Of a DNA stretch of 64,000 bases, positions 13,127 through 53,677 are shown piece after piece. The DNA is from Oopsacas minuta (Eukaryota; Animalia; Porifera): NCBI GenBank assembly GCA_024704765.1, contig JAKMXF010000299.1:940556-1004555 (forward strand). Direction: 5' to 3'. Position numbers and translations under genes: made by a program. The first letter of the stretch is position 1, and each line of letters begins with the position of its first letter. Under the pieces are notes generated by a model. The model made no database searches. It was not told the DNA's origin and worked only from the letters and a program-made list of their open reading frames with translations.

Positions 13127-14478
13127 CAGTGCCGGTCAAAAAGAATTGCCCAGAATAAATTTACCTCAAATTCTTATATCTATGACTGATTTTAACAATA
13201 ATGCTTTATTATAATCAAGTAAATTGTTGTTAGTATTTAGTAGTACCTCCTCTTGCTTGAATTACGGCTTTACATCTTTGCGGCAACTCTCAATTAGAGT
13301 ATGGAGCCTGTTAATGTCGATGCTATCCCAAGTGCTTAATATGGCATTCCACAACTTTGAGTGGTTGGATGGGCTTTTCTCTTGAATTCTGAGGGAAATG
13401 TGATCCCAGAGATTCTCAATCGGATTTAGATCAGGTGACTGAGCAGGCCAATTCATAACCTCTATTTTTTGCTCACCAAACCATTGCTTAGTACCCTTTG
13501 ACTTATGGCATGGGGCGTTGTCTTGCTGAAAGGTCCAGTCAGAATGTAGAGAATGCAAATCAACGCTTGGGATTAGTGCATTTTCCAATATATCAATGTA
13601 GGAATTTGTCTTGAGGTTCCCAGATACTTTCCACAAGAGTCCTACGCCACTCCAGCAAAAGCATCCCCAAACCATGATGCCACCTCCACTAAACTTGCAA
13701 GTTTTTTGAAGACACTTCTCTGAGAACTCCTCCCCTTTCATCCTCCTGACGTAGGCTCTCCCGTCATTAGTATACAGAAAGAACCTAGATTCGTCACTGA
13801 ACACAACTCTTGCCCATTCTTCAGTATTCCAATTCTTGTGCGATCTTGCGAAGGAAAGTCGGTCTCTTTTGTGCTGGTAGTAAGGCGGGGCTTCCTTCGC
13901 GGTTTTCGTCCGAACAGTCCAGCCCCTCGTAATCTTCTCTGAACTGTTGAAGTGGAAAGTTTTATCGAATATTCTGATAACACTTCAGCTTTGATCTGAG
14001 TAGCAGTCTTAAATCGATCCTTTTTGCATTTTCTGACCAATAAATTGTCTTGCCTTTTGGTTGTGACACGAGGCCTACCCGGAATAGCGAGGTCTCTTAC
14101 CGTGCCAGTCAGCCTGTGTTTCTTGAGGATCTCGGCTACACTTTTTTGGCTACACCCAACCATTTTAGCTACCTCCCTCTGAGTATGGCCACTTTCTGAA
14201 AGTAGGATCAGGTTGGCTCGATTTTCAATGGTAATTCGGGGTTTAGAAGGCATCGAAAATTCGATAAAAACAGATAAATTGGAAAAAAAGAATACAAAAT
14301 AAAAACTGTAGGTTGTGCAAATATAATAAATGGATTAGCTGTGTTGGTGCGTTACTTGTCAAAATACATATGCCTGAGTATGGTTTCGCAAGAATTCAAC
14401 TATCTGGTCAGTGTATACAATTTGACATTTGCTATACTGTATACATTCATTTTGAGCAATTCTTTTTGACCGGCACTG
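13127..14478 (-). mobile_element. Full-length Tc1 (DD34E) transposon, transposase broken by one frameshift
   Basis: TIR CAGTGCCGGTCAAAAAGAATTGC at both ends with TA TSD. ORFs 14253-13738 (paired HTH) and 13804-13262 (FSDESRF, QDNAPCH, SPDLNPIENLW) join with a 1-bp shift near 13870. Confidence 0.95.
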
Positions 14479-14642: not shown

Positions 14643-14812
14643 AATATGCTGTATGTATGTTCATTTGACTGATACTTCACAATATACTATCCTTTTCTCC
14701 CATGGAAATGCTGTTGACCTTGGCCAGATGTCCAGTTTTTACGTTGCTCTTGGTACCAAGATCAATTGTAACATTTTTTCTTACGACTATTCCGGCTATG
14801 GCGCTAGTAGTG
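14643..14812 (+). CDS. ABHD17: ABHD17-family depalmitoylase, internal exon ([58 protein letters not shown])
   Basis: Hallmark [13 protein letters not shown] and [11 protein letters not shown] motifs. Acceptor ttttag ends at 14642; donor gtgagt at 14813 (phase 1). Upstream exon(s) not located. Confidence 0.95.
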
Positions 14813-21965: not shown

Positions 21966-22690
21966 TATGTGAAATGTGATTAAAATTTTGCGAATATCCA
22001 TTGTCGCGCTATTTGAGTGGCTAAATTCAAATATGTTGAATAAGCAAATCAGGTGCTTTAAGTGCAGTTCCCTGTCTGAAGATAATACATTTTCACGTCC
22101 TAAAATGTATTGTTTTGGAGATGTCGGATAGGAAAGTTTCAAGCAAAGTAACTTTCTTGTTTTGGATACTATCAAGTAATACACTCGCCGATATCTCAGA
22201 AACTATGCATTTTAGGGTGTGAAAAGTGTAATCTTCACACCTGAAACCGCCCTTAGAGTACCGATTTGTTATTCAGCATATTCGTGAATGTAATTTTATC
22301 AGTCCATACCGCGGACCATGGATAGTCCAAAGTTTTAGCGACATTCCACATGTTTATATTATCGAAAATTGTGCAACCCCAAAAAGACTGTGCTGTTAGC
22401 CCCGAAACCAGTGACGGCGCCAAGCTGGGGCTAGGTCATGGGTAGCTGGCCCAAACCAGGGTATATTTACCCCAGCACGAGCACAATTGGGGCTCAAACT
22501 ATATTTTTCCCCTAATTAGGTGGTAACTTCATTGAGATCTAATCCAATACTATTCGTATTTGTCTGTTAGTATTATTGTCACGAGTTTAACAATGGACTC
22601 TAGTGATATTAGTAAAGAGACAATCCAGATAAATTTCCACTAATATTTGTCTTGTGCTATTTTAAAAGATCTCAAACTCATCAGCTAGAT

Positions 22691-23594
22691 AATTGTAAAC
22701 ACATTTCTGTACTCTTCTACGGGGATGGATTTGAAATACTGGTACAGGTCCGTCCCGAGTGTTTGTAATGTGTTAAAATCTTTGCCTTGAAAGTAGATTT
22801 TAAGCTTGGGGAATAGCCAAAAATCACATGGAACTAGGTCTGGTGAGTATGGTGGATGGGGAAGTAATTCTAACCCTTCTACATCCAAGAGATCTTTGGT
22901 AAGCTTAGCTGTATGGGAACTGGCGTTATCAATTAAAATCTTCATTCCTCGAGTTCCGGTTTTCGGGCGGTACTTTCTATATTTTCTATCAAATTTGGAA
23001 GCACTTGCTTTGTAAAGAAGTAGCAGTAACAGCCTTGCCACACTCACAAGGTAAGTGCAAGACAATTCCATGACTACTGAAGAAGATGGTATACATAATC
23101 TTAGGTTTTCTAAAGTCGGGCCTAGGAATTTTCGCCGGTTGTTCGTCGCCCCTCACCTATGATCGCTTCTTATACTTGCTATATGGTGTTGAATAATTAC
23201 CCACGTCTCATCACCAGTAATAATCTCTGTTAGGCGTCTAGAATCGCAGTTGTCATAAGTTTCCAAGAGTTTCTTGGTAATATTCAGTCGTGCCAACCTT
23301 TGATTCTCACTGAGCTTATGCGGGACTCATTTCCCACAAATCGATCGGTAGCCAAGCTCAGTGGTCAGAATTATATGAATAGCTCCCGATGAAATCTCCA
23401 TACTTTCTTCTAACTGATTGACAGTAAGCACTGTCTTCCATGACCATACTTTCAATGAGTGCGATATTCTCTGAAGTGCTGGCGGATACCGGTCTTCCAG
23501 ATCGAGGCAAATCTGTGACATCAGCATCACCAGATCTCAAACGGGCAGCCCATCGCTCTACAGTATATCTGGAAAGGCAATCCACACACAATAT
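22691..23594 (-). mobile_element. Truncated inverted copy of the adjacent mariner
   Basis: Near-identical reverse complement of 23887-24792; ORFs 22685-23071 and 23358-23606 mirror the + strand copy; no TIRs of its own. Confidence 0.9.
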
Positions 23595-24922
23595 TAGGGC
23601 GTTCAATAAGTCTTGCGGGTCATGTTATACCTTAGGAATTAGTCAAGTAATATATCTAACTTTCATATATTATAAGTCATATAGTTAAACTCCATATACT
23701 GAAAGTTTCAAGCTTATTCAATACTTATTATCTATTTTTGAGATAGTCATATGTAGTCAATTTATACCCATGGTTGAATTTATTGCTTCAAAGGTTGATA
23801 ATTTCAACCTCAAATGGCGAGCTTATATAGAGTTTCGCACACTACTCAAGATCCACCCCGTACAGATCTTCAGTAAGTTACAGGAGATATTGTGCGTTGA
23901 TTGCCCTTCCAGATCTACTGTAGAGCGATGGGCTGCCCGTTTTAGATCTGGTGATGCTGATGTCACAGATTTGCCTCGATCTGGAAGACCGGTATCCGCC
24001 ACCAATTCAGAGAATATCGCACTCAATGAAAGTATGGTCATGGAAGACATGTGCATTACTGTCAATCAGTTAGACCAAAGTATGGAGATTTCATCGGGAG
24101 CTATTCATACAATTCTGACCACTGAGCTTGGCTACCGATCGATTTGTGGGAAATGGGTTCCGCATAAGCTCAGTGAGAATCAAAGGTTGGCACGACTGAA
24201 TATTGCCAAGAAACTCTTGGAAACTTATGACAACTGCGATTCTAGACGCCTAACAGAGATTATTACTGGTGACGAAACGTGGGTGTATTATTCAACACCA
24301 TATAGCAAGTATAAGGAGCGATCATAGGCGAGGGGCGATGAATAACCGGCGAAAATCCTAGGCCCGACTTCAGAAAACGTATGATTATGTATACCATCTT
24401 CTTCATAGTCATGGAATTGTTTTGCACTTACCTTGTGAGTGTGGCAAGGCTGTTACTGCTACTTTCTTTACAAAGCAAGTGCTTCCAAATTTGATAGAAA
24501 ATATAGAAAGTACCGCCCGAAAACCGGAACTCGAGGAATGAAGATTTTAATTGATAACGCCAGTTCCCATACAGCTAAGCTTACCAAAGATCTCTTGGAT
24601 GTAGAAGGGTTAGAATTACTTCCCCATCCACCATACTCACCAGACCTAGTTCCATGTGATTTTTGACTATTCCCCAAGCTTAAAATCTACCTTCTAGGCA
24701 AAGATTTTAACATATTACAAGCACTCGGAACGGGACTGTACCAATACTTCAAGCCCATCCCCATAGAAGAGTACAGAAATGTGTTTACAATTGGGTGGAA
24801 AGGTTAAAACTTTGTGTATCTACAGGAGGGGATTGCTTTGAATAAATATTATAGTTAATTAGTGTATATAGTGTTTGTATCATATTCTATGATATTACCG
24901 CAAGACTTATTGAACGCCCTAG
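23594..24922 (+). mobile_element. Full-length mariner (DD34D) transposon, transposase pseudogenised
   Basis: TIR (T/C)TAGGGCGTTCAATAAGTCTTGCGG with TA flanks. Transposase from ATG 23770 with WVPHKL, TGDETWV, IDNASSH and YSPDLVPCDF; stop at 24325 and frameshifts. Confidence 0.92.
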
Positions 24923-33007: not shown

Positions 33008-35255
33008 GTAAGTTTCCAATCACTGATGAATATGACTTATTCCATAAGTATTATTATGTACTCTCAGTGGTGTCATGCCATATGGGCAGGGGAAGTACTC
33101 GTCTCCCATTACTGCTTTTAATTCCTATTAGGTTTAATTCTGACTAATCTATTGTTCTAGTTTTACACTCATTAAAAGTTAATTATTTTGAACCTAAAGC
33201 CCATCATATACATGCAACTTTGTTGTATATAGCAATTGAGCTTGCATGATAAACAGAGTACATTCAACAATTTTATTTCATGAAAATATTCTTTTTCGCA
33301 CAATTTGCTTATATGAAGGTAAATTGTTGTGTATTGTATAAATATACAAATTTTAATCTATATATTTGTAATCTATAAGTACTTAGTTATTTTCAATTCC
33401 ACCAAGCTTCTCATTTCCGCATTCTTGATTAATTTCCTTCATGGATGATCTTACATTCCATCCCTCCAAGTGCACAGGGTGGCTCCAAAGTTCTGATACA
33501 TAATCACAATTAATATACAACCTTTATCAGGAAATATTCTCAATGATTTACTCTTCCATGACATACCTTATATGTTTCCTAACGAATATTATTCCAATAT
33601 AGTGTATACTATTTCGTAAAAAATTGTGATTGACCATGGAGTCTGAGAGGTCAGCAATTATTGAGTTGCTTGTGGCGGGGAAAAGACCTTCAGAAATTTT
33701 GTAACTGCTGAATATTGCAAAGGATGTAAGACATTTATCTACAGGACGATAAATCAATATAAGGAAACATGGGACACTGTAGGCAAGTAGTGATCTCGTC
33801 GTTCATGCTCTGTAACGATCCAACTCTCAAGAAAGTGGTGCGAGAACGGCTTTGGCTGAACTCACACCATTCGATGAGGAAAATGGCCTTAGGAGCTTAA
33901 TATATCTCGCCGAGCATACAAAAGGTTGTAAATGGGACCTAGGAAGGCGCTCTTTTAAACACAAAAGGTACAATTCCTATTTGGGACGGTGAAAGAAAAG
34001 AGAGTATCCCGGAGCAAGAACCTACTTGCTCTGCAATTTATTGGAGTTCTCGAGAATATCCTTTTCTCAGATGAGAAGGTTCTCACAATGGAGGAGGCTA
34101 CAAATAGTCAAAACGGCAGAGTCATCTCACCTCAGTTTCAGTGATCCCTGATAGTTCAGATACATCAGTCGGATGAAGAAACTGCTGTCGGTTATGATTT
34201 GTGTGGGTCTCTACTGTTGGCCGGACACCACTGCTTTTCATCGCTCAGGAGTGGAAATCAATGCCAAAACATGCCAAGAGCTTGTATTAGAGCCTGTGGT
34301 AAAAGTTCTAAGCCAGACCAAGTTTTCTGGACAGCCATTTCTCTTCCAACAAGATATGCTCCCGCCCATACTGCCAATATGACCCAAGATTGGATGAAGT
34401 ACAATACTTCCAATTTTATTCACAAGGAAGAATGGCCACCATACAGTCCCTATTTAAATCCCATGGGATATTCTGTATGGTCTATCTTGGAAAACAAGGC
34501 TTATTCTGTGTCACACAACACAGTTAACTCTCTAAAGATTTCCTTGTATCGAGAATGGGAGAAGATACCCCCAAGAAACCCTACCACAGTGGTTTAGAAG
34601 CAAAGAATAGACAAAAAATTGATTCCGTATTTGATGGTTTCTTTTCATTTTATATTGTTTAAATGATTCTCATTTAAAATATCTAAGCGATTGAGACTCT
34701 AGAAGCTGTAAAATTTCTTCATCAAAGATGCGAAATATTTATAGGAAAATTGCGGCTTCATGATTTCCAAATTTAGCCACAATTTCAAATGAACCTGTAA
34801 GAGTAATTACATAATCGAATGTTACTAATCTGGTATACTTTATATATTTCGACTATGCTAATTCTAAATATCTTGTTTCCATGCCGTATCTTGTATATAT
34901 TTCGTGAACATAAGATTTCTAAAATCTAGTAAAATCCATACAGAATTTTTACAAAGAGGAATACTTAAAGTGTCAGGAAAAATAAACAACACAAAACAAC
35001 AGCGCAAAATGAATCGGATACACGCATTACGATTCCTAAAAACGTAATCTAAAACCACAAAACCCGAAACAGTGCGCAACCTATAATTTTCAATGATATT
35101 CCATTACAACTTTTCGTTGCTAGGAATTCCCATTGTAGCATACTCCAACAATGGAATGAAATAGTATTGTATTTCGTTCTTGAAATTTATCATAGCGACT
35201 TATATATATAATCTACTGAATAATACAACATGTTTTTCGGAATTTCTTGAAAACA

Positions 35256-36685
35256 ATGACAGAAGAGTTAACTTTCCCAAAGGCCCGCCTCGAATTGGCA
35301 AGAATCCTGAAAGACAATAATAATTGTATCTTGAAAACGACAAAATATTTCAAAGAACACTTTGAAATAGACTCTGATAATACAAAACTCTTGGAAACGT
35401 TGCTGTTAAGAATTCGGAACAGAGTCAAGAAGGCGAAGAGATCTTTAGATTGCTTAGAAGGAAAATGGTGGCATTCTAGCATTTCCATGAAACCTGAGTT
35501 AAAGAAAAATCATGTTTCTGATTTACTAGAGTCGTCTTCTGATGATGGTGAAGTTCCCATTCATTCAGTGAGTCATAGGAAGCATCTTGATGATCTCTCT
35601 CTGCAACAACAGCGTACTCGATTGTCAAGTCTGCTAGAATGCATTAAGTCACTCTCAGTTATTGAGAATACTACAGAAATAAGCATTACAGCACTCTCAT
35701 TACAACTATTGGCAAATGAGGAGAATAATCGTCAGGTTGCTACGGTAGCCAGAGAGATTATTGTCAGTGGAGGATTCTGTAACCTCAGTAACAAGCATGT
35801 TCCAGTTGATAAAGCCTTATTCCTGCTGGATTTACTTGAAGTGGGCAGACGAAAATACACTCAACTACGTCAAACACTTCTACCAGACGATATACATTTC
35901 CCATCTTACAGCAAGCTAGCTAATCTGAGAGATGTCATGATTTCGCGATCCAGTATAACTTCATATCCTAATCCAGCTAAACCAATAGGTATACACGCAC
36001 CATATTGTCTTCAAGTTCAGAAAACCCTGGAAAGAATATTATCAATGGTAGATCGCCCCACAAGTGAAGAATTCCCACTCACATTTAAAATCGCAGATGG
36101 CTTAGATGGTTCTGGTTGTCACACTATCTACAACCAGCAGACAACTAATACTTTCACCAAAAACTTCATTCTGTTTTGTTTCAAGCCCATCTCCATCCAC
36201 ACTGTAACAAACAGGATTGTTTGGCAGAATAAATCCCCTAATTCACCCTTCTCTCAAAGACCTATTTTTCTCTGCGCTGCGACAGAATGCGAAGAAAATA
36301 TTCGTTCCTTCATGGAGACTATGATTAATCCCGATACAGCGATGTTGCAAAATGGGATTCCTTTAGAAAATGGTGTTGTCAATGTCGATATTATCCGCTC
36401 AATGTTTGATGGGAAGATGGCAGCCATTCTCTCTGGAGCTGGAGGAGCCAGTTGTCAGATGTGCACTGCCACACATAAAGATTTGAAGGACCGGAATTTA
36501 GTTCTTGAAGGGTTCCCCATCAACAGAAATATCACAGATGCAATCGAGTTATTTTCGCACATTGATGACATTGAGTCGTTCTTTGCTCTTTCGACTAATG
36601 AACGCTTCAATTTAACTCATCAACCAATTTCAGAGATTAACATACATCCGGCATCTCCACTTCATTCATACACAGGCGTATTTAG
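35256..36685 (+). CDS. RAG1-like/Transib transposase exon 1 (NBD-like, DDBD-like, first two catalytic Asp, zinc-binding CxxC)
   Basis: ATG 35256. HRKHLDDLSLQQQRTRL..LLANEENNRQ is similar to the RAG1 NBD. Also GLDGSG (D at 36105), PNSPFSQRP, MFDGK (D at 36408), CQMC and SPLH; ends at GC donor AG|GCAAGT. Confidence 0.92.
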
Positions 36686-36749
36686 GCAAGTAATCTAGTA
36701 CTCCATTAACCATTCAGAATTTGTCTTCACATAATTAAACCAATTTTAG

Positions 36750-37500
36750 GTGGTTCAATTTGCTGGTATATCATCTTCGCCTCGAAAAGTTTACCTGGTC
36801 CCCAACTTCACCAGTCATCAAGGAGTCAATGAAATTCCTTCAAACATTTATTCAGGAGAAGACAGGATTAAAGGTTGACCAGCCTAATTCTAGCGGTGGA
36901 ACCACCTCAACAGGGAATGTTGCTAGAAGAGCCTTTTCTGATGAAACTGAATACCTTGAATGCATTCTATCAACTGTAGCAATACAATATCGCCCAATCT
37001 TATCAAAGATACATACTCAGCTTTCAGCCATTCTTCGGGTTTTCAATTCAAGTCACAAGGTTAACACTTTGGAATTGGGGAAGTGGTGCAAGGATACCTA
37101 CCTTGTCATCTTAGATTCTTTCCCCTGGGCTAGCATGACTCCAACCCTGCACAAGCTCTTGGCCCATTCCGAGGAGTTAATACATGAGTCGAATTCTAGC
37201 TATGGCTTAAAGGCATTTTCAGAAGAAGGCACAGAATCATGCAACAGATTAGTTAGAAAATATCGGGAGAATTTAGCTCGTAAAGTTAGTTTTGAGACCA
37301 ATATTATGGATATCTTCATCAGATTAACTTCTCAAAGTGATCCAACCTTAGTAAACTATCGAAGAATTTTGACTTGTGAACGATGTGGTCAATCTGGACA
37401 CACAACGAGATCTAAATGCTGCAATGCTATGAACAGTCAGAAAACTAGTGTACAGACTTTATTCACGACTTTAACCTCCAATACAGATTACCTATCATGA
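36750..37500 (+). CDS. RAG1-like/Transib transposase exon 2 (zinc-binding His pair, catalytic Glu, C-terminal Cys/His tail)
   Basis: Acceptor ttttag ends at 36749. Motifs TGNVARR, TPTLHKLLAH, SEEGTESCNRLVRKYRENLARK (E at 37234), DIFIRL..SDP and CERCGQSGHTTRSKC; stop TGA at 37498-37500. Spliced product is 726 aa. Confidence 0.92.
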
Positions 37501-40500
37501 ACTTAAGAATGAATATAATGTATATTTTGTAAATCAATAAGATAAATTCCATCATAAGTGTGACGTCATAACTCTATAAATACAAGCGCTACAACAAAAT
37601 TTTAAGTTCAAGGTGATTGCCAAATACGGATAACCCATATGTAATCAATAGATTTCATGGCGATAAAGTCGAGTAAAATGTATTTATTGAAGAAAATTTA
37701 AAATTTCACATATATCAATGACGTCATAACTTGGAAATTTTAGGCCATATACTTGTTATGACAAGCTGTATTGGTTCCTTATATATAATAATCTATATGT
37801 AAATAATACATTTCATATGGCTATCTCACACCAAAATAGCTATTCTTTACTAACTGCCCTATTAAACCACTGTGCCTACGTGCCGCATGGAAGGATTCCC
37901 GAATAGACTCAGGGCTGTCATTTCCAAAATGGTGGTAATATTGAATAAATGACTAGGTAATCTCTTCCCAATAGTATGTATTAATTATTTATAGGGGATC
38001 AATGATATAGGTCATGCTGAAAAAACATTATATACAAAATGGTTTGTATCAGAACCTTGGATCCACCCTTGTAGTGCTTGGTTAATGGATTGTACAAAGA
38101 ATTGACTAGCATAAAGTGTATGTCATCAATCCCTAGGCTACCCAGGAATGTGGTAACATTCCATCCTCAAAATACTTTCTTAACAACATCAAGTGACCCC
38201 ATGTTCTACGAGGCTGGGCTATTTGAATCTTCTATTTATTCACATTTCAACTCTCTATATTGTATTTTAATACGAGGTTACAAGATCGCCCTCTGAAGTC
38301 TCCTAATCATCTTCTGTCTCCCCAGCTTTCTAACTACATCAATTGTATATAGTATCTACATAACAATTGCAATACAGTAGCTATTTTGAATAAGTTACTA
38401 GGCATTATTGATTTGTATAATTGTCATAATGTAAGTAGAATCGATTGATTTGCAAATACGTAATCAACGTGAAATTTATCGGTTTCGGGTCTTATGACCC
38501 TATTTTGAAAAGTTCCTAGACAAAAAATGAGTATACTACAATACATTATCAAAAGTGTTCGAAATATGGTCAAATGAAAATCATATTTTCGAAATTTGAT
38601 GCTATCACGATCTGGTAGTTAATAGTTGATTCGATGAGATAGGATTTGTTCATCGCGAATTCGTCGATAGCAGCTATATATATATATATATAGCATTTTT
38701 TGAGGGCATTATGTCATATCTCAGCGAAGTCACTTTATGCATTCTTCATACATTTGATTATCATGGAATCCTAAAGTAGAATTGCGTATTGAATATGCAT
38801 TACCGATTTGAGATACCCGCGAAAGAATAATGTAAATTGATAGATATATACTTTGATTGAGGCTTTTTCGGTAGGGTTTTGACCTCATTAGGATTTATCA
38901 GTTACCTCCACAAATTCATAAATGTCTGTAGGAAATCTTTGTAGCTTAATTCAAAGTAAGATGCATTATTTTATTAGCTATATAATTATCACTACATGTA
39001 CCTCAATATACTAGTTCAGAGTTGGAATCGGGTCCACTTTCATAATCCCACCCGACCGAACCCAAAGTGTAAATATGTGTCGATATTAACTGAATTCCTC
39101 TAAAATATATGTTTTGTTTACTTTTTAACTAATATTGTTCAACAAAGTTTTTCTATTGATGCTTTTTTTACATGGTGACCCTGAAATCATTTTGATTTGC
39201 GCATATTTGGGAATTACAGATTAAGGAGTATGTAGGATGTATGACAGATATTCCTATCCTAACTAATACTGTATTTAGTGGGAGAGAGTTTAATCCTAAG
39301 ATGTCTGCCAAATTGTTTTTCATTGGTCTCAATACAATTTATAAGTCCATATTCCTTGAATACTATATTCGAGTTTCATACCAAAATCAATTAATTTGAT
39401 AAACATTATTTAGTTGAATAAATATTTAGTAAGGCCAAGTATATTTTAGGTAATTTGCAAAATGCAAGTGGTTTTCATGTTTACTGAAGTTGTACAACCA
39501 CAATATGATCTTTTTTGAGTATTTCACAATCTAATACGTTCTTTGAGGAAATCTCTTAATTTTTCTGTTTATGTACATCTATTGGACCAGAATTTAATAA
39601 TTCAAAATTGCAGAATTTCTTATGTAAGCAATTGAGTCAATATGTTGAAGATGCTTTCGGAGAATTGATCCTACTAAATGGAGACCCATCAAGAAGATCT
39701 TTGAATGTTGTTGTCCAGCCTATATTCAAGTAAAATAGATAAGAAAACGAAGTGATATTTTCCTTAAAAGCTAATTCAAGGTTGTGCCAAGTCACTCACT
39801 GGTCATGTTGAAGATCCTTCTAGGTATATTCAACCTATTCTTTGCGACAATAGATACCGAAGAAAGAAGAATAATGTGTATCATCTTCTCATATCTTGTC
39901 AGTTTGCAAGATCTACAAGAGAAGTATTGGGCGGCTCAAATTGAAGAAAGTATAGTTACAACTTACCGATTATTTTGCTTGGGGACTAGGTACGTCGGAG
40001 AAATTTTCAAAATTATTTCGACCTGACATTACTGGTCATTCTTGTATCCGATTCAATACTGTCCAAAATATATTAAATTCTTTTAAGAGAATATTAATAT
40101 TGCTGAAGAAATTGGTGAAATTTTCTGCTTCAACGGGCTGAAAGGCCAATTCACCAGAAATCTCTGTTGATAATCTGCGTAGGAGGTCATTACATGCCCC
40201 TTATGGTTGTATGCATGTCCCAATCATAGACGATAATGAACATTTGAATTCAAGCAAGACCTTGCTATACAAACATTCTAAACCGGTCTTCAGTTACATG
40301 AGCCGAGGTTCTGTATCTCAAGTGTTGGATCTTCCACGAAGACTAATGACCTAAAGCATATGTGCGTCTACAAAATATTGATGGAAAACATAAGATAGTC
40401 CTTTTAAACTGCCCTTTTGCAGCCCTCATCCCAACCCAATAGAAAATCTGTGGTTCTGGATTAAATTTGAAATTGATTCAAACCTTTTTCTACTATGGGT

Positions 40501-52364: not shown

Positions 52365-53677
52365 CAGGGTTGGGCACAAGTTCTGCCACAATATTATAAT
52401 CCAGCCAAAAATTACTCCATTAGTTATTTGTTTCTGTCATTTAGCTCAAACTTTGTTATAATATATATTTTTCACTCTTTCCCTGAAATGTTATATTATC
52501 TTAGCCTTTTGAAGCGATAATTGGTCATGGAGTAAGAGAGGTCGAAGATCATTGAATTATTTCAAGCAGGAAATAATCCGTCAGAAATCTTCAATCTTCT
52601 GAAATTCCCTAATAGTAGAAGGAAGTTCATTACTCGAACTATTGAGCGATATGAAGTGACTGGCGGGATTACTGATAAGCCAAGATCTGGCCGTCCACGG
52701 TTTGTAATGACTCAAAGGCTTAAAAAAGTACTGCTTCAACGAATTCGCCAAAATCCCCGCCGGTCAATGGGCAAAATGGCCAAAGAACTAAGAGTTTCAC
52801 GTTTATCAATCGGACGAGTTGTTAAAAATAACTTGCATGTACACTCTTTCAAGAGAAAGAGAGTGGATCACATCACGACACTAGTGGAGGCAAAAAGAGC
52901 ATCGAGAAGCAAGGGACTTCTTAAGAGGCACGCGATCCATGGTCTCAATTTATTCCTGTTCTCAGATGAGAATTTATTCACCATTGAGGAAACAACGAAC
53001 CCTCAAAATGATCACATCATCTCATCCTCAATTTCAACTATCCCAGAAGAACTTCTATCTGTCAGCCGTATACAAAAGCCACTTTCAGTCATGGTTTGGG
53101 TGGGAATATCATCAATTGGCCGGACACCACTCATATTCGTGCCTGTGGGCGTAAAAATCCACACCCAAACCTACCGTGAGCTTATTTTAGAACCTGTAAT
53201 ACAAGATCTCTCTAAAACTATGTTTTCTGGGAAACCTTTCGTGTTCCAACAAGATGATGCTCCAGCCCACACATCGAATTCAACTCAGGCCTGGCTTCGA
53301 AGCAATAATCCAGATTTTAATCAAAAGGAGGAATGGCCGCCATACAGCCCCGATTTAAATCCAATGGATTATTCTATCTGGCCCATTTTGGAAACGAGGA
53401 CATGTTTGAAGTCTCACACCAATATAGACTCCCTGAAAAAGTCTTTGTGTCGAGAATGGAAGAGAATACCTCAAGAAATACTCCGTACCAAAGTAGAGGC
53501 CTTCCCTAAGAGACTAAAGGCTGTAATTGAAAGAAAAGGAGGATACATCGAATAATTAACGTATCTGCGAATCTATATACCATATTTAGTAGTACATACC
53601 GAATTTCTACACAATACAATATATCAATCGGAAAATATAGTTATTTAAATATGTGGCAGAACTTATGCCCAACCCTG
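52365..53677 (+). mobile_element. Full-length maT (DD37D) transposon, transposase 52527-53555 with one nonsense codon
   Basis: TIR CAGGGTTGGGCAYAAGTTCTGCCACA with TA TSD. FSDE, QQD and SPDLNPMDY, with 37 residues between the 2nd and 3rd Asp; TAA at codon 3. Confidence 0.95.

Follow-up and report, generated by a model that had tools for sequence, protein, structure and literature searches.

A Transib transposon copy with recombination-signal-like ends, very probably complete, in the sponge Oopsacas minuta

The window analysed here is a stretch of 64,000 nt from contig JAKMXF010000299.1 of the Oopsacas minuta assembly GCA_024704765.1, and all coordinates refer to this stretch unless another locus is named. 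The element under study, a copy of a Transib transposon, occupies positions 34585-37874 (3,290 bp). We consider it very probably to be a complete, single-gene copy of a multi-copy O. minuta family, inserted in an older Tc1/mariner element inside an intron of an ABHD17-like gene. Apart from the transposase gene, no further open reading frame (ORF) longer than 91 aa was found inside 34585-37874 on either strand, and the non-coding arms of the element measure 671 bp (5') and 374 bp (3').

The two ends of the element are perfect inverted repeats. The 5' terminal 12-mer CACAGTGGTTTA (34585-34596, + strand) is matched by its exact reverse complement at the 3' end (37863-37874, - strand), and its first seven bases, CACAGTG, form a heptamer resembling that of the recombination signal sequence (RSS); this start with CAC and an RSS-like heptamer is that of Transib terminal inverted repeats. 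With one mismatch allowed, CACAGTGGTTTA matched the 64-kb window only at the two element ends, and this 12-mer search detected neither additional copies nor miniature derivatives elsewhere in the stretch. Each 12-mer is followed by the inner block AAAGAATAG, but at different distances. At the short-spacer 5' end, the block lies 5 bp past the 12-mer and 10 bp past the heptamer (34602-34610, + strand), whereas at the long-spacer 3' end it lies 14 bp past the 12-mer and 19 bp past the heptamer (37840-37848, - strand). The target site duplication CCTAC flanks the element on the left (34580-34584) and on the right (37875-37879), and insertion-free paralogues of the host mariner contain a single 5-mer at this place. 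An earlier note on this DNA had described CACAGTG...CACTGTG ends and a CCTAC duplication, and both were recovered at these positions.

For comparison, we used three full-length sister copies from the same O. minuta assembly (L001, L005, and L006) and three full-length relatives found in the ENA assemblies ERZ20067936 and ERZ25071281 (L002-L004). The sequence CACAGTGGTTTA was unchanged in L001, L002, and L005 and carried one or two changes in L003, L004, and L006. The combination of the 12-mer with a AAAGAATAG-like (RRGAATAG-like) block, with spacers of 5 bp (5' end) and 14 bp (3' end), was present in the window copy and in L001-L004. Two of the three relatives were flanked by perfect 5-bp duplications (TAAAG and CTTCG), and L003 had no matching duplication. 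The spacer sequences have diverged among L002, L003, and L004, whose proteins are 52-60% identical, but the spacing has been retained. Because the same architecture is found in these relatives despite their diverged spacers and proteins, the asymmetry of the ends is conserved and very likely functional. The ends of AanRAGL contain 4- and 13-bp spacers (PMC9435367), and the difference between the two spacers is 9 bp both there and in the sponge Transib.

The coding region is composed of two exons. Two long ORFs of the + strand, 35247-36698 and 36760-37500, form one frame once positions 36686-36749 are removed. The joined segments 35256-36685 and 36750-37500 amount to 2,181 nt, that is, 726 codons and a stop codon with zero internal stops, which agrees with the unbroken 726-aa spliced ORF of the earlier note. 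Exon 1 (35256-36685, + strand) encodes aa 1-476 and contains two bases of codon 477, while exon 2 (36750-37500, + strand) extends from the remainder of this codon to aa 726 and the stop. The 64-nt phase 2 intron between them (36686-36749, + strand) has the borders AG/GCAAGT...TTTTAG/G, with a GC donor in this copy. Its retention leads to a stop codon at 36696-36698, and its removal recreates the SYTGVFRWFNLLVYHL (FRWFNLL) junction, which is read without interruption in the full-length relatives. We infer that the intron is spliced out. The relatives L002-L004 (723-725 aa) are intronless, each having one uninterrupted ORF in its own contig, so this intron is a gain of the O. minuta lineage or subfamily.

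The predicted protein contains the D-D-E and zinc-binding motifs GLDGSG, MFDGK, CQMC, LHKLLAH, and SEEGTES, all five of which had been attributed to the RAG1/Transib core. In the alignments, D284 (GLDGSG), D385 (MFDGK), E639 (SEEGTES), C400/C403, and H611/H616 correspond to the catalytic and zinc-binding residues of the Transib transposase of Helicoverpa zea (HzTransib), of BbRAG1L, and of RAG1. We take their mouse RAG1 equivalents to be D600, D708, E962, C727/C730, and H937/H942, respectively. The region resembling the nonamer-binding domain (NBD), the pre-RNase H/RNase H region with D284 and D385, and C400/C403 are encoded by exon 1; H611/H616, E639, and a C-terminal CCGHC tail are encoded by exon 2. 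The spacing from C400 to H611 is 211 residues, and the corresponding spacing in RAG1 is presumably about 210 residues.

When the single exons were used as queries, no solved relative scored better than HzTransib (E 2e-7 and 2e-13), and both BbRAG1L and RAG1 came after it. The structures of HzTransib (PDB 6pqn and related entries) are reportedly those of Liu, Yang, and Schatz from 2019. A family profile built from 18 family sequences matched the solved structures with E-values of 1.7e-46 for HzTransib, 7.5e-18 for BbRAG1L, and 7e-18 for mouse RAG1, and with bit scores of 162 for HzTransib vs 67 for RAG1/RAG1L. The alignment of the profile with mouse RAG1 spans the NBD through the RNase H domain. 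An AlphaFold (AF2) model of P0003, a homologue 60% identical to the window protein, had a pLDDT of 80 and a pTM of 0.69, and its fold matched HzTransib (E 9e-24, TM 0.79 by target) and RAG1 (E 1.5e-22 over ~650 columns).

The Pfam searches added little to these results. Nothing useful was found on exon 1, where RAG1_RNase_H (PF26100), a domain known in the tables of the homologues, was not triggered, and the RAG1 match on exon 2 was sub-threshold. No Pfam match to a RING or RAG1L N-terminal zinc finger was obtained in the window protein or its homologues, and only ~100 residues lie upstream of the NBD-like region. This region, at about aa 100-165, reads SHRKHLDDLSLQQQRTRL vs GRPRQHLLSLTRRAQKHRL in RAG1; the helix and the basic residues are kept, and the NBD motif GRPR/K reads SHRK in the sponge protein, with R and K kept but not the GRP triad. 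The isolated NBD of RAG1 (PDB 3gna) matched the family profile with an E-value of 2.5e-3. After the CxxC motif, the sponge protein has ~35 residues beyond HzTransib that align with BbRAG1L (profile 406-455 vs Hz 241-255). The CCGHC tail (aa 686-701, C-x2-C-G-x2-G-H-x5-C-C) is recognised at the motif level only and is present in 11 of 16 aligned relatives; the Pfam zinc-knuckle match at the C-terminus of the window protein is weak. P0061, P0068, P0074, and P0079 of O. minuta, as well as P0084, lack the tail and are otherwise collinear; judging by this distribution, gain or loss of the tail has taken place inside the sponge family.

In the exhaustive profile search, the best 150 representatives were metagenomic or assembly proteins, and a word-index search from P0141 returned only one relative. 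The relative P0252 (1,174 aa) matches the profile over residues 368-1101 and so has an N-terminal extension of ~370 aa; its cluster comprises 31 near-identical members on metagenomic contigs of 4.5-7.3 kb.

The comparison with known systems places the element nearest to the Transibs. With HzTransib, it has in common the D-D-E residues, the CxxC and HxxxxH motifs, the heptamer-like end, the 5-bp duplication, and, presumably, a nick-hairpin mechanism, and HzTransib is the best match in both sequence and fold. Meanwhile, the identity of the two proteins is 22-23%, the sponge protein has the ~35 extra residues after CxxC, its C-terminus bears the CCGHC tail and is different from that of HzTransib, and its NBD-like N-terminal region aligns to RAG1, whereas the solved HzTransib chain begins past that region. 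With vertebrate RAG1 and the RSS, the element shares the heptamer CACAGTG followed at two distances by a second, A-rich block, the NBD-like domain, the DDE residues, the zinc site, and the C-to-H spacing of the zinc domain. However, the spacers measure 10 and 19 bp, differing by 9 bp, vs 12 and 23 in the RSS, the inner block is AAAGAATAG vs ACAAAAACC, and the identity to RAG1 is 15-17% in the fold alignment. Unlike RAG1, the sponge element has no RAG2 partner and is a multi-copy transposable element.

An alternative classification would make this an element of the RAGL (ProtoRAG) type, or a direct intermediate between Transib and RAG, that has lost its RAG2-like gene. The NBD-like region, the zinc domain of RAG1 length, the CCGHC tail, and the asymmetric ends speak for it. 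The RAG1-like core, the CCGHC-type tail, and the 5-bp duplication are common to the sponge element, to ProtoRAG/BbRAGL of amphioxus (PDB 6b40), and to other RAGL elements, some families of which also have asymmetric ends. Nevertheless, we regard this alternative as very improbable. Unlike RAGL/ProtoRAG, the sponge element has no RAG2L gene: no RAG2-like (kelch-propeller) gene was found inside the window element or in the gene tables of the other copies and relatives, and there is neither a second gene nor room for one in the window copy or in L001-L006. RING and RAG1 or RAG1L N-terminal zinc fingers are likewise absent from the sponge protein, and its similarity to RAGL is weaker than to Transib, the profile favouring HzTransib far over RAG1/RAG1L (162 vs 67 bits). 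Moreover, all of the features that speak for the alternative have already been reported in Transibs without RAG2.

Within the Transibs, a Subgroup I has been defined by asymmetric ends, a region equivalent to alpha11-alpha12, CTT1, and an NBD-equivalent, and its hosts are ctenophores (Mnemiopsis, Pleurobrachia), Hydra (Transib-9_HM), and bacteria (Tao 2022, PMC9435367). RAG2-less Transibs of the RAG1-like type have been published before (Tao 2022, PMC9435367; Martin 2023, PMC10462144). The sponge element shares with Subgroup I a RAG1-core-like transposase without RAG2L, asymmetric ends, a 5-bp duplication, a zinc-binding domain longer than that of HzTransib, and the CTT1/CCGHC zinc tail, and its NBD-like region is a candidate NBD-equivalent. 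The ~35 residues past CxxC that align with BbRAG1L, together with the spacing of 211 residues from C400 to H611, may represent the region equivalent to alpha11-alpha12, the RAG2-binding part of the zinc-binding domain. It is unlike Subgroup I in its poriferan host, in the loss of the GRP triad (SHRK), and in the 64-nt intron gained in the O. minuta subfamily. By its matching features, we assign it as a Subgroup I-like Transib.

Sponges are not mentioned as Transib hosts in Tao 2022 (PMC9435367) and its supplements, in Martin 2023 (PMC10462144), or in Kapitonov and Koonin 2015, and the O. minuta genome paper (PMC10280926) mentions neither Transib nor RAG1. As its features have been published and sponges are unmentioned in these Transib papers, the element is of a known kind and represents a new host record. 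The earlier note had linked it to the lineage of the V(D)J recombinase; the copy is of the published RAG2-less Transib type and not a RAGL, and it does not provide a new link.

The sister copies show the recent history of the family. L001, L005, and L006 begin and end at the same bases as the window element and are flanked by their own target site duplications, AAGAC, TAATA, and AGGTG, respectively. L001 is 97.2% identical to the window copy, has 26 private substitutions (0.8%), and carries a frameshift and a stop; L005 (95.2% identity, 96 private substitutions) and L006 (93.9% identity, 131 private substitutions) also have broken ORFs. The window copy, with the duplication CCTAC and 46 private substitutions (1.4%), has an intact ORF. 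The mobility of the family in the O. minuta lineage was recent enough that copies 93.9-97.2% identical to that of the window are found. The earlier note had proposed a search for copies in different duplications, and these three are such copies. The description of the element as young holds only in a relative sense, as its 1.4% of private divergence exceeds the 0.8% of the broken L001. Two further observations were made at the L005 locus. Another Transib gene, which is more distant and encodes 467 aa (L005:7855-9258, - strand), lies ~1 kb from the L005 copy, and L005:7367-7469 contains a 103-bp match (81% identity) to the 3' end of the window element.

Several observations weigh against our reading of the window copy. 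The Subgroup I placement comes from feature matching and not from a tree, and the fold support comes from the model of the 60%-identical homologue P0003 and not from the window protein. All three sister copies are broken. The private coding changes of the window copy, 8 synonymous and 18 non-synonymous, agree with the neutral expectation of 72.7% non-synonymous (P = 0.42). One of them, K643R, is private to the window copy and lies four residues past the catalytic E in a column that is invariant in 16 relatives, position 643 being K also in HzTransib, BbRAG1L, and RAG1. The donor of the intron is GC and not GT. In the sequencing runs X1-X4, which are all of one sample and of unrecorded library kind, no spliced-junction contig is listed among the contigs, and no empty allele of the exact locus was seen.

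These points bear above all on the rival view that the copy is dead by now. It would then be a relic in neutral decay with a frame that is open by chance, and its protein or mRNA would no longer work owing to the GC donor and to 18 private replacements, K643R among them. We give this view a little less than an even chance. It fits the neutral pattern of the private coding changes (8 and 18; P = 0.42), and the window copy appears, from its substitutions, to have drifted neutrally since insertion. Selection had been considered from a window-L001 ratio of non-synonymous to synonymous rates of ~0.6 (P = 0.053), and it was rejected, since the value is not distinguishable from neutral. We computed that the frame would stay free of stop codons in 33-47% of copies after 20-30 neutral substitutions. 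Because a copy this old can keep its frame by chance, the open frame is not evidence of activity; the earlier note had taken the intact ORF as a sign of activity, but about four in ten neutral copies of this divergence keep it. The three sisters are broken, with L001 carrying fewer private changes (0.8%) than the window copy. As for the donor, it is GT in all three sister copies, and every aligned run contig has T at 36687, so GC is a change private to the window copy.

On the other side, the D-D-E and zinc residues are all kept, and the window protein retains 134 of the 138 columns for which conservation extends to 15 or more of 16 relatives, the four departures being conservative. The 12-mer and the inner block are free of mismatches at both ends. 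Functional donors of the GC-AG type have the consensus AG/GCAAGT, as here. The claim that no disabling lesion is present in the copy stands in part: there are no stops or frameshifts, and it is the only intact one of the four full-length copies compared here, but it carries the GT>GC donor change, K643R, and 18 private amino acid changes in all. The window copy may still encode a working enzyme, but we hold this to be less likely than not.

The depth of contigs in the runs X1-X4 was used as a rough guide to copy number only. In X1-X3, the depth of the non-coding arms of the element was ~10-30x that of the single-copy flank. The runs containing the element match the single-copy flank of the window without a difference. 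In X4, the contigs stop at 36687 and resume at 36745, and the depth was 67 across the intron vs 281 and 322 in the exons; the unique flank in the host intron had a depth of 0-4 vs 234-371 over the exons of the element. In X2, one contig passes straight through the intron donor. By reasoning, 36687 and 36745 are the last and the first bases common to the spliced and unspliced forms. The O. minuta genome project includes an RNA-seq library (PMC10280926), and X4 is compatible, as a hint only, with that library and a mix of spliced and unspliced molecules. A step in X4 depth from ~70 to ~284 between 35191 and 35217 could mark a transcript start.

The closest protein match of the transposase (95% identity) is an O. 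minuta protein, and its locus (L001, GCA_024704765.1) contains a full-length copy with unrelated flanks. By this match, we identify the host as a hexactinellid sponge and hence an early-branching animal, the case in which, according to the earlier note, the element would matter most. ABHD17-like exon peptides are encoded by the + strand near 14698, 32862, and 50587. As they flank the element at ~32.9 and 50.6 kb, it lies within an intron of ~17.6 kb. The name ABHD17 for the host gene is our assumption from sequence motifs, and the Pfam alpha/beta-hydrolase matches of these exons are sub-threshold. The ABHD17 intron proposed earlier is thus a plausible context, with the flanking exon peptides in its favour and the gene name less secure.

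The recipient of the insertion is a Tc1/mariner element on the + strand. Its left part covers 33400-34579, with the start upstream of 33400 and a DDE_3 match in the ORF 34199-34597, and its right part covers 37880-38074, the depth falling to the single-copy level at 38075. The depth of this mariner family was ~40-100x single-copy in X1 and X3 and far higher in X2. Insertion-free mariner paralogues span the insertion point (joints 34579>37890) with a single 5-mer, whose consensus is TCTGC vs CCTAC in the window. These joints had been considered as an empty allele of this locus and were rejected as such: the bridging letters differ from the window flanks, so the joints derive from paralogous mariner copies. 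Other Tc1/mariner fragments with DDE_3 and helix-turn-helix (HTH) matches crowd the window, namely at 13262-14253, 22685-23071, 23770-24327, and 52656-53555.

This setting also bears on the idea that the gene is a domesticated host gene and not a transposon. An intact ORF with an intron is what such a gene would have. However, the gene lies between perfect inverted ends and a target duplication, it sits within another transposon that itself lies in an intron, at least four copies with separate duplications are spread over unrelated loci, and the divergence is neutral. We consider domestication hardly credible, and we keep to the reading of a complete Transib copy.

From the biochemistry of HzTransib, BbRAGL, and RAG, a mechanism can be proposed for this Transib. 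The catalytic core of a transposase dimer would bind the CACAGTG heptamer, and the NBD-like domain would bind the inner AAAGAATAG block. The short-spacer 5' end would be paired with the long-spacer 3' end. A nick at the heptamer border would be followed by the formation of a hairpin on the flanking DNA and the excision of the element, which might then be reinserted with a 5-bp stagger. A stronger version of this proposal holds that the sponge family is still mobile and that its RAG2-less transposase enforces a 12/23-like pairing of 5' and 3' ends through the NBD-like domain on AAAGAATAG. We consider this version rather unlikely as a whole. If it were true, coupled pairing of asymmetric ends would be older than RAG2 and would already have existed in a basal animal lineage. 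As a further option, the lineage-specific intron, which separates the second catalytic D from the catalytic E, might allow control by splicing through a truncated product of 483 aa. Control of this kind, splicing-dependent and through a truncated product, is known from the P element.

It is accepted that the RAG1 recombinase descends from an ancestor of the Transib type, and the element by which RAG2 was later captured is considered to have been similar to those Transibs that possess an NBD, a CCGHC tail, and asymmetric ends. The copy described here leaves the current model of RAG origin unchanged. It adds sponges to the host range of Transib and offers a natural complete element, in which the two ends, a duplication, and an open frame are combined with comparative evidence on the important bases of the ends. 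With such an element, both the pairing rule and the part played by the NBD-like domain can be put directly to the test. More Transib transposases need biochemistry, as was explicitly called for in Martin 2023 (PMC10462144).

The non-coding arms of the element also contain conserved blocks. In the 5' arm, CCCGAAACAGTGCGCAAC (35063-35080, + strand), which lies ~180 nt upstream of the ATG, is near-invariant in four distant elements, whereas the DNA around it is poorly conserved in the same four; it is followed by the conserved blocks ATTCCATT and GTTGCTAGG. By its conservation, CCCGAAACAGTGCGCAAC may be a promoter or a binding site. The 3' subterminal region (37540-37860, + strand) is a tandem of two units of ~158 bp, each composed of TGACGTCATAA (at 37561 and 37719) and a ATAACCCATATG-like block. 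The sequence TGACGTCATAA contains the palindrome TGACGTCA, which resembles the cAMP response element (CRE) and has no other sites in the 64-kb window. In the window copy, L003, and L004, the distances of the TGACGTCATAA pair from the 3' end are 155-156 and 312-314 nt, in spite of protein identities of ~52%, and the pair is also present in L001. In the relatives, the tandem region is located at L003:4679-5049 and L004:4673-5164, and it is degenerate in L002.

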